In this document: positions 13,897 through 16,800 of the stretch, in pieces
Position numbering within the stretch: the first letter of the stretch is position 1
Layout: every line of letters begins with the position of its first letter
DNA from: Schmidtea polychroa
Taxonomy: Eukaryota
Assembly: GCA_044892525.1 (NCBI GenBank)
Contig: JBJFYX010000019.1
Span: forward strand, 186,001-250,000
Direction: 5' to 3'
DNA length: 64,000 nucleotides
The notes under the pieces: model-generated
Databases searched by the model: none
The model's input: the letters and a program-made list of their open reading frames with translations, nothing else
What the model was told of the DNA's origin: nothing
Position numbers and translations under genes: made by a program

Positions 13897-16800
13897 CAAA
13901 TGCTACTGCAAAAACATTTTCAAAAAATGTGGTAATGAAGAGATTTTGACAATTGGAGGAGATGAAATTCAGATTGCAGATCTTACAAAGTCAGAAATCA
14001 GCCAAAACAAACCAGATAATCAGAATACTTCAACAATTTCTGAATTAAAGAATGAGAATCGTCAATTACGTTTGGAAATGAAAAACATGAAGAAAATGAT
14101 GGAACAAATGATAAAATCAATTGAAACTTTAGAACAAATTATCAAAGACTCTGCCAAAATTTCTACAGAAAATAGAAAAACACAACCAAATTCAGATCAG
14201 ATTGTGAAAATTCGAGAAAAAGAGCATTATTTAAACAAAGTGTGTGTTACACATTAATTGTATACAAGATTGTAGATGCAGTCATTGAGGAACCAGTCCA
14301 AGATACTGTGGACCTGCCAATACCAATAGAGCCCACAGTTGTCGAAGAACCACAGATAACCACAAACAACGAAAATATAGAAATTAGTGAAACAGATAGA
14401 GATTTGGTAGAGAAACACACAACACCTGCACCAACATCAGTCAGCAAATCAAAACAACAACCAAAAAATATCCGGTCCAAGAGCATAAAGAAAAGAAGAC
14501 AAGTGGATGACACCGAATACCAAGAAAACACAAAGGATAACAAAAAAATACGTACCGGTGGAGGACCGTCAACGGCAAATACTCCACTGACCAATCTTAT
14601 TATACCAAATATGAAAATCAACGATGAACTAAAAATCCAATGCAATTGCAAAAAAAATAGATACTCGTACTCAACAGATACCAATGCCACCAAACACTTC
14701 AAAGAGTTACATCCACAATCCGGAGATCCAATAATAGAGTGCGGAATATGCAAAGCCATCATCACTATCAATGAAGCAATAGAACATATAGCAGTCCATA
14801 GAGAGAACAATACAAAAGAAAGGAACATACAGCAGCCCGCAATCAAACCAACAGAGGAGGACATCCCTACGGAGACCAGCTGACTATCACAGACAGCGAT
14901 AGAATATTACATAAAATTTCTATCGCTCAGTATACCTACTCCAAACACCGTGGCCTATATCAAACCAACATGTGCCACGGACCTGATAGAGAATAATAAG
15001 GCTGGTCTCTACAGTAACATCCATTTGGATACAATCGTGGGCTCTGATAGGGTCGTATGGCTGATCCATTGGAAACTCTGTCACTGGTCAATATACCTAG
15101 CGGACAAAGAAAATAGGGAGTCGGTAATTCTTGATACTGATGACCAAATATCCGAATCAGAGAAAAGTACAATAAAGGCCAAAATGGATGAAATACTAAG
15201 GATGACTACACAGGATCAAGCCCCATTCAACAGAATATCAATTGACGAATACCCCAAACAAGATAACGATTATGATTGTGGAGTGTTCGTTCTTCAATAT
15301 ATAATGGACTTCTTAGAAAATCCAGAGAGACCCTTATTCAATATGCCTGATTCAGATAAAATAAGAACACAAATTACAACGAGCATACTAGAAGATATCA
15401 AAAAATACAAAAAATGCAACAATGAAACAAAGAATGAAGACATAGAAGACGCCATAAATCAATTTAGACTACACCAATTATCAATAAATGACATACTTAA
15501 TTGGTTCAAGAACAGATTCCTAAAAGATCAAAAGCCGAGAAGAGCATGCAGAAGCGAAAATAAAAAACTCAAGCTATGCTCATACCAAATACAGAGATTA
15601 TATACAATAAACTCGGGCAAAGCAATAATACAAATTCACAATGAAACATGCAAAGTTATTGACCTAACATCAACGGCAATGGACCTGCATTTTATAAGAA
15701 CAAAGCCTCCAAAGATACAAAATATGATTAATATTACGGATAAAAGACCAGAATGGGAATCATCAAAGCCATTTACAGAGAAAGATGTATCCATTGGAAT
15801 AAAAAACAGCAAAGATGCAGCACCAGGAGAGGATGGAATTCCAATAAGAGCATGGAAAGAATGGATGCCTGAAGACCCATTAACTCCAATATTCAACAAA
15901 ATAATAGAATCCAAAAACATCCCAGATTCATGGAAAACTTATGTTACAAAGTTAATTAAAAAACTAGGCAAAAGTAACCAAGCACACAATCCGGCAAATT
16001 GGAGACCAATAGCATTAATGCCCACAAGTTATAGAATTTTTATGAAAATCCTTAACAAAAGAATTCTCCAATGGATCCACGAACACAGGTTAATTTCGAA
16101 ATGGCAAAAGGCAGTGAATATATCCAATGGGTGTGATGAACATAATTACATCATCACTGTTCAAAAAGAAAAGCCCAACAGAAAAAGATACAAAGGATGT
16201 GAATGCCACCTAGTGTTCTTGGATCTTGCGGATGCCTTCGGCAGCATTCCACACGAAGTGATCTGGCATACTTTAGAACAGAAAGGCCTAAATAAAAACA
16301 CCATAAGCCTATTGCAAGAATGCTATAAAGACTGTCACACTATATATCAAAGTGGTGACACCAGATCAAGCCAAATCAAACAAGTAAAAGGTGTTAGACA
16401 AGGATGCCCACTATCAATGACCATCTTCAGCCTCTGTATTGAATATCTAATACAAGCTGCAATAAATAGTGGGAAAGGAGTCGAGATAGCTGGAGAGAAA
16501 ATAAGCATTTTAGCATATGCGGACGATCTCGTTCTTATGGCACCACAACACTATCAAATCCAAGAAATGCTCAACATAATAGTGGAACAAGCAAAGATGG
16601 CTCACCTTATATTTAAACCCGAAAAGTGTGGTTACTACCTAAATAAAAAAGATGCTATTGGATGGGAAAACAACATCTTTCTCGACGGAACAAAGATCAA
16701 ACATATAAATGAGGAAAATCTTTACACTTACCTTGGTGTCACAGTTGGTAGCACAAAGAAAAACGATCTAAATCAAATTTTCAAAGAAGTTGAAGACAAA

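Follow-up and report, generated by a model that had tools for sequence, protein, structure and literature searches.

An in-frame TGA codon lying between the zinc-finger open reading frame (ORF1) and the protease-reverse transcriptase (RT) frame (ORF2) of the retrotransposon el4 was analysed in a stretch of 64,000 nucleotides of the Schmidtea polychroa genome (assembly GCA_044892525.1, contig JBJFYX010000019.1, positions 186,001 to 250,000; hereafter the window, numbered from its first letter). On the comparative evidence, the codon is most probably a programmed UGA readthrough site, and one that belongs to the whole NeSL/R5-like (planarian 'LIN') clade of elements without long terminal repeats (non-LTR). 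In elements that are otherwise intact, the stop, its position, its identity as TGA and the C directly after it (position +4) are preserved under purifying selection, and ORF2 is without a start codon of its own. That a functional in-frame UGA links ORF1 to the protease and RT by readthrough had been proposed in an earlier note on this DNA, and the proposal is strongly supported by the junction counts, intact copies and diverged lineages described below. Ribosomal readthrough as the decoding event, with its efficiency and the residue inserted, is what we infer from these comparisons.

The junction was re-read in the window, and the earlier note's description of it was found to be accurate: the zinc-finger ORF and the protease-RT frame of el4 are in the same frame and are parted by TGA-CTA (14881-14886), a perfect 10-bp stem begins 11 nt after the stop, the homologous codon of a related element, el1, is TGA-CTAG, and el1 has also suffered ordinary TGG-to-stop decay at 5823 (TGA) and 6594 (TAG). 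The coordinates of these and the other features are collected in Table 1.

The genome (781 Mb, 30% GC, with four very large contigs, C1-C4) contains this DNA as an array, and three copies of its tandem unit (19,282 bp) lie in the window. Of 28S rRNA only the 3' part is present in a unit, on the minus strand; the opposite, plus strand bears a pile-up of four or more NeSL/R5-like elements, nested or adjacent. More than 40 el4-identical copies, on contigs C19, C23, C37, C82, C94 and C99 and in two regions of C1, proved to be units of this array with its 28S fragments and were rejected as independent support. At least 7 small contigs carry the array, and on C1 it lies at 29.65-29.97 Mb and at the very end (271.06-271.60 of 271.60 Mb). 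The el4 copy itself (14176-17766) is chimeric: its ORF1 is of the ETS type found in the dispersed copy L034, with a proportion of synonymous differences (pS) of 0.20, its ORF2 groups with el1-like copies (pS to L034 of 0.74), and by these distances the exchange point lies at or near the stop. The ORF2 of el4 is cut short at 17443, where the 3' end is replaced by a 99% identical duplicate of 14952-15275 of the same element in another frame, and the C-terminal part with the CCHC-like motif and the putative endonuclease is missing. The window's el1 (decayed) and el4 (truncated and chimeric), both of them array copies, are therefore poor witnesses, and the weight is carried by the dispersed copies, because the window copies are not independent insertions.

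Junctions were counted in the genome by a search pattern covering the 20 nt that follow it, and 291 exact matches were obtained. TGA precedes 289 of them and TGG none; of the remaining two, one copy is heavily decayed and has TGC (L036) and the other is 5'-truncated at that point. The earlier note had named TGG in young or consensus copies as the result that would speak against it, and the intact dispersed copies were all found with TGA. Eighteen dispersed loci from C1-C4 were then compared, representing at least four sublineages, which are named here by the residues around the stop (asterisk): ETS*LSQT, EIS*LSQT, NIA*LAQA and NIA*LSQS. TGA-CTA is present in every one of these loci that reaches the codon, save L036, and three full-length copies are open on both sides of the TGA (Table 1), the ORF2 of full-length relatives being about 1090 codons long. 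Between the el4-like and el1-like lineages the synonymous sites are saturated (pS 0.83) and the proportion of non-synonymous differences (pN) is 0.26, and the stop, kept across this divergence, has outlasted the time for which a neutral codon would survive. Within lineages the ratio of non-synonymous to synonymous substitution rates (dN/dS) is 0.10-0.13 for ORF2 and 0.28-0.45 for ORF1, from which it follows that both frames are translated and constrained.

Lineages from other assemblies were sought by protein and profile search of 1.84 billion representatives with a profile beginning just after the stop, and the best matches all begin a few residues past profile position 1, as when a gene caller restarts after a stop. 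Eight further lineages were obtained from six assemblies (L049, which is the same as L052, L050, L051 and L053-L057), with 21-35% amino-acid identity to el4 or to el2, another element of the window. All eight have a TGA in frame at the same column of the alignment and a zinc-finger ORF upstream of it, and the codon after the TGA is CTA (three), CTT (two), CTG, CTC or CAA (one each). When one el4-like and one el1-like planarian lineage were added to them, the frame was shared, the stop was TGA and C stood at +4 in 10/10 lineages of this set, to which the counts below refer. CTA follows the stop in the five nearest lineages, for which the chance is 3.8e-4 given their own Leu codon usage. The conservation of UGA-CUA, a check named in the earlier note, is thus seen in the planarian lineages and those nearest to them, and over the whole clade it is reduced to UGA with C at +4. 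The terminal stops of ORF2 in the same 10 elements are TAA in six, TGA in three and TAG in one. The first Met of ORF2 stands anywhere from residue 14 to residue 362, often past the catalytic His, and no AUG is conserved, while Leu1, Ile6 and Glu7, right after the stop, are invariant. Every other Trp codon is TGG (13-24 per element), so that the genetic code of these elements is the standard one. In a scan of metagenome contigs a single locus was recovered, the element of L049 in another sample. In the public gene calls the elements of L049-L057 are split in two, or ORF2 is started at an arbitrary GTG or ATG after the stop.

The best of the rival explanations, though an improbable one, takes the UGA as a true terminator, after which ORF2 would be made separately by termination-reinitiation, non-AUG initiation or internal entry. 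Such coupling is known in two-ORF non-LTR elements and has been proposed for L1 and SART1 (PMC5972666), and some of the present lineages have a 3' structure near the stop, as SART1 needs; yet reinitiation has no need of the shared frame that all 10 lineages possess, nor of a stop that is always in the leakiest context, TGA-C, while the terminal stops are mostly TAA. A conserved AUG is wanting in ORF2, the invariant residues that directly follow the stop form part of the protease fold, and the el2 family, which is nested in the clade, reads through the position as one ORF. Spliced-leader trans-splicing as the source of an AUG was also considered and was rejected, as no conserved acceptor was seen and the conservation of TGA-C and of the frame would be left unexplained.

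Removal of the stop in the RNA, for instance by A-to-I editing of UGA to UGG, would give one long ORF and would put Trp exactly where Ulp1 carries Trp. It is judged somewhat less probable again than separate initiation: the target A follows a G, a neighbour disfavoured by ADARs, the stop lies outside the el4 stem with no conserved duplex around it, and the invariant C at +4 finds no explanation. Far down the scale stands a TGA that arose as an inactivating founder mutation and was spread by array amplification or trans-mobilisation, with a sense codon in the active masters. TGA is one transition from TGG, the window copies are array copies and el1 displays ordinary TGG-to-stop decay, all of which would suit such an origin; but a sense codon is found in 0/291 copies save the one decayed TGC, full-length copies are intact on both sides of the stop, and the stop is kept across saturated dS and in eight lineages of other assemblies at a dN/dS of about 0.1, by which this explanation is effectively refuted. 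Selenocysteine, of which UGA is the codon, can be dismissed with near certainty, since relatives have Trp or Leu at the position and never Cys, and no match to the selenocysteine insertion sequence (SECIS) or to any other Rfam family, save 28S rRNA fragments in the window, was found in the window or the 10 related loci.

Table 1. Coordinates of the readthrough candidate, its surroundings and the elements compared with it (positions in the window)
Feature	Position	Strand	Remark
In-frame TGA, candidate readthrough codon	14881..14883	+	aligns with the tunnel Trp of Ulp1/SENP
CTA (Leu), context +4 to +6	14884..14886	+	directly 3' of the TGA
5' arm of perfect 10-bp stem, AGCGATAGAA	14895..14904	+	Ala-Ile-Glu codons
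3' arm of 10-bp stem, TTCTATCGCT	14918..14927	+	exact reverse complement of AGCGATAGAA
el4 ORF1, open frame, 235 codons	14176..14880	+	5'-truncated; GGG motif, C2H2-like zinc finger, linker end ...DIPTETS
el4 ORF2, open frame, 867 codons	14884..17484	+	without own start codon near the 5' end
Peptidase_C48 (Ulp1-like), Pfam match	15046..15399	+	catalytic His-Asp-Cys and Gln conserved
RVT_1 reverse transcriptase	15976..16746	+	Pfam match
el1 TGA-CTAG, homologous codon	5616..5622	+	decayed array copy
el2 CTA-CTA (Leu-Leu), sense codon at the el4-type site	8505..8510	+	comparator; frame continuous
el2 in-frame TGA-CGG	8091..8096	+	139 codons upstream of the el4-type site, before GG motif and zinc finger
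Second array copy of el4 junction and stem	34162..34208	+	identical
Third array copy of el4 junction and stem	53444..53490	+	identical
28S rRNA fragments	4055-4696, 23337-23978, 42618-43259, 63541-64000	minus
L034, full-length dispersed copy			689 open codons, TGA, 1089 codons; no other stop
L032, full-length dispersed copy			306 open codons, TGA, 1087 codons; no other stop
L045, full-length dispersed copy			445 open codons, TGA, 1091 codons; no other stop

Under programmed readthrough, most ribosomes would halt at the UGA and release an abundant ORF1 protein made up of the N-terminal region and the zinc finger, and a minority, aided by the leaky UGA-C(UA), would decode the UGA and produce a rarer ORF1-protease-RT-endonuclease fusion. 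UGA-C and UGA-CUA(G) are established leaky contexts in Sindbis virus, plant viruses and mammalian genes. The ratio of structural to enzymatic protein would be set by the leakiness of the UGA, as it is in the gag/gag-pol system of gammaretroviruses, and the protease could then cut the fusion at a hydrophobic-x-GG(G) motif upstream of the stop. In el4 this motif is KIRTGGGPS at ~14560-14575, about 100 residues before the stop, and it recurs in most lineages and in relatives with a continuous ORF (L045, L050, L053, P0048, P0053 and P0071). Its form fits a SUMO-like site at which the Ulp1-like protease of the element itself could cut.

The place of the stop within the protease was determined by alignment and by structural modelling. 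By phmmer, ORF2 residue 1 (Leu) falls on position 49 of the Ulp1 chain 1euv_A, the L of LNDTIIEFF (E 1e-5), and in an X-joined alignment the stop of the 10 lineages shares a column with the WVND Trp of P0016, a distantly related retroelement protease whose ORF is continuous; both bear out the alignment of the stop with the Ulp1 Trp that had been put forward in the earlier note. In yeast Ulp1, LND is preceded by W448, which together with W515 clamps the Gly-Gly of SUMO. No lineage departs from the partner Trp (HW motif) or from the catalytic His, Asp and Gln, and the catalytic Cys is kept in all lineages but L056. At about ORF2 residue 130 of L056 a Ser stands for this Cys (DIDSGI instead of DCG), with the in-frame TGA-C retained. 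The continuous el2 protein was modelled with AlphaFold at a mean predicted local distance difference test score (pLDDT) of 76, with values above 90 from the site onward and below 50 at residues 89-103, just upstream of it; the model matches SENP5 and Ulp1 with Z 18, and the VIA alignments begin at model residues 87-92, about 15 before the site. In the model, then, the stop falls on the N-terminal margin of the protease core, at a canonical residue of the fold. Insertion of Trp at the UGA is plausible, and decoding as Trp is attractive because the codon stands at the Trp of the Gly-Gly tunnel of Ulp1 and a single transition separates it from TGG.

The history of the site was read from a tree made by a quick maximum-likelihood search. 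The TGA-bearing elements together with el2 form one clade (approximate likelihood-ratio test, aLRT, 96), outside which lie the relatives with a continuous ORF (P0039, P0048, P0053, P0057, P0071, P0045, P0073, P0109 and P0016), and el2, with its sense codon at the site, branches from within the planarian lineages (aLRT 99), so that one ancient gain and one loss of the stop are indicated. A sense codon at the el4-type site is also present in L058/P0083. In el2 an in-frame TGA-CGG stands farther upstream (Table 1) and is kept in the diverged el2-like Logan contig L058 (273-278); as its 67 matches in this genome are all identical array copies, it is L058 that provides the one independent observation of it. 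This TGA-CGG may be a leaky stop that has been relocated.

A more elaborate proposal, which is held tentatively and leaned against rather than towards, is that a leaky UGA replaced the TGG of the tunnel Trp, whereby near-cognate decoding by tRNA-Trp would extend the protein and at the same time restore an active-site residue, tying the competence of the protease to recoding in an ancient and evolvable device. Its age would be indicated by the single clade with more than 1 substitution per site between lineages, and its evolvability by el2, where the codon is now Leu and a new UGA-CGG lies upstream of the zinc finger.

Several points weigh against readthrough at a signal of the whole clade, or against Trp as the residue inserted. 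One group of them concerns the hairpin, which the earlier note had counted as part of the signal and whose stem it had proposed to test for covariation; no covariation was seen across the family. In el4 the stem has a 13-nt loop and an 11-nt spacer from the stop and, with its ETS relatives, a stability of -13 kcal/mol, at the 2.5th percentile of windows from the same ORF2. A perfect hairpin of 10 bp with at least 3 G/C in each arm is met only twice in each 19.3-kb repeat unit, the el4 stem being one of the two. The stem is kept only in the ETS sublineage (L034, L037 and, with one mismatch, L040); in the sister lineage, EIS, it has been broken with no compensating change, and it is absent from el1-like copies, where a different, weaker two-helix fold is found instead. 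When 50-90 nt after the stop were folded in the 10 lineages and compared with windows from the same ORF2, no common 3' structure was found; some lineages have stems of another kind, L051, L053 and L057 have none and no excess 3' stability, and over all 10 the stability is weakly enriched (uncorrected Fisher p of 0.002 at 50 nt and of 0.03 at 70 nt). The 10-bp stem is accordingly placed outside the conserved signal, the invariant part of which, as read from the alignments, is the UGA with C at +4, and in el4 the stem may act as a lineage-specific enhancer of readthrough. Other points concern the evidence at large. Support for translation across the stop is wholly comparative, and the only raw RNA run, which bears a different organism label, gave 0 reads over 13600-17700; a different run, guessed to be RNA, has no junction coverage on el4 and contains 56% of the sampled el1-like junction words. 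The other runs are DNA-like and have no variant at the stop. The eight further lineages are known from contigs, and the clade structure depends on the quick tree search. As for the residue, Leu and not Trp stands at the site in el2, the nearest relative that lacks the stop, and the more distant continuous relatives align ambiguously at the stop column.

As a strategy of retroviruses and RNA viruses, programmed readthrough is textbook knowledge. The solutions known to us for non-LTR elements are reinitiation, 2A peptides, frameshifts and a single ORF. The present arrangement resembles the gag-pol junction of murine leukaemia virus (MuLV) in having an in-frame stop between a nucleic-acid-binding protein and a protease-RT, with a minority enzymatic fusion as the expected product. 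It differs in that MuLV uses UAG-G with an obligatory conserved pseudoknot and inserts Gln, whereas the present stop is UGA-C, no 3' structure is conserved, the element belongs to the non-LTR (target-primed) retrotransposons, and its protease, of the Ulp1/C48 cysteine type, has the stop at one of the residues of its fold. A type II-like signal is indicated by the UGA with C at +4 in all 10 lineages and by an in-frame ORF2 that is under purifying selection and without its own start. The same stop, with C at +4 and often CUA (CUAG in the el1-like element), is used at the Sindbis nsP3/nsP4 junction, in UGA-CUA(G) genes and in plant-virus type II systems, and some alphaviruses have, like el4, a 3' stem about 10 nt downstream; those systems are RNA viruses or cellular genes, whereas the sites described here are candidates known from sequence.

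The assignment to the NeSL clade is based on an RVT_1 match (E 2e-29 to 2e-32) and on a Ulp1-like Peptidase_C48 domain N-terminal to the RT, with the fold match given above. In full-length copies a CCHC-like CRxC...H...C and a PD-(D/E)xK-like KPDIV...IIDIKCP were recognised by eye at the C-terminus, with no Pfam match. The order of N-terminal zinc finger(s), Ulp1-like protease and RT, here with a putative CCHC and restriction-like endonuclease (RLE) at the C-terminus, is that of NeSL-1 of C. elegans, R5 of Girardia and LIN_SM, which differ in that a single protein is described for them. 28S rDNA is the target of the planarian families LIN9/24/26_SM (PMC4640811), and here 28S 3' fragments on the minus strand flank the element pile-up, with dispersed copies present on C1-C4 too. 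According to Kojima and Jurka, Utopia families as a rule code for a single protein and planarian LIN are among the relatives of NeSL; a stop codon is not mentioned (PMC4640811). Reinitiation and 2A are the translation solutions for non-LTR elements given in a review, and L1 and SART1 are like the present elements in translating a second ORF from one RNA; they differ in that their ORFs are separate or overlapping, in no obligatory frame, and that ORF2 has its own AUG (PMC5972666). No report of stop-codon readthrough for NeSL, R5, LIN or other non-LTR elements was found in full-text searches of the literature, and an earlier notice in Burke et al. 2003 or in Repbase is possible.

If the reading of the TGA as a programmed readthrough site is true, a clade-wide conserved UGA-C would add stop-codon readthrough to the translation strategies of non-LTR elements, and at least 10 divergent natural readthrough cassettes, with and without 3' hairpins, would become available for working out context rules in invertebrates. 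The annotation of the elements would change as well, since gene callers now split them in two or start ORF2 arbitrarily, and these split calls, as a systematic artefact of annotation, could be used for finding more recoding sites. The R2 family is now used for genome engineering, and with the site described here it becomes testable how the ratio of ORF1 to enzyme, and possibly the activation of the protease, is set in an R2-related RLE-type retrotransposon.

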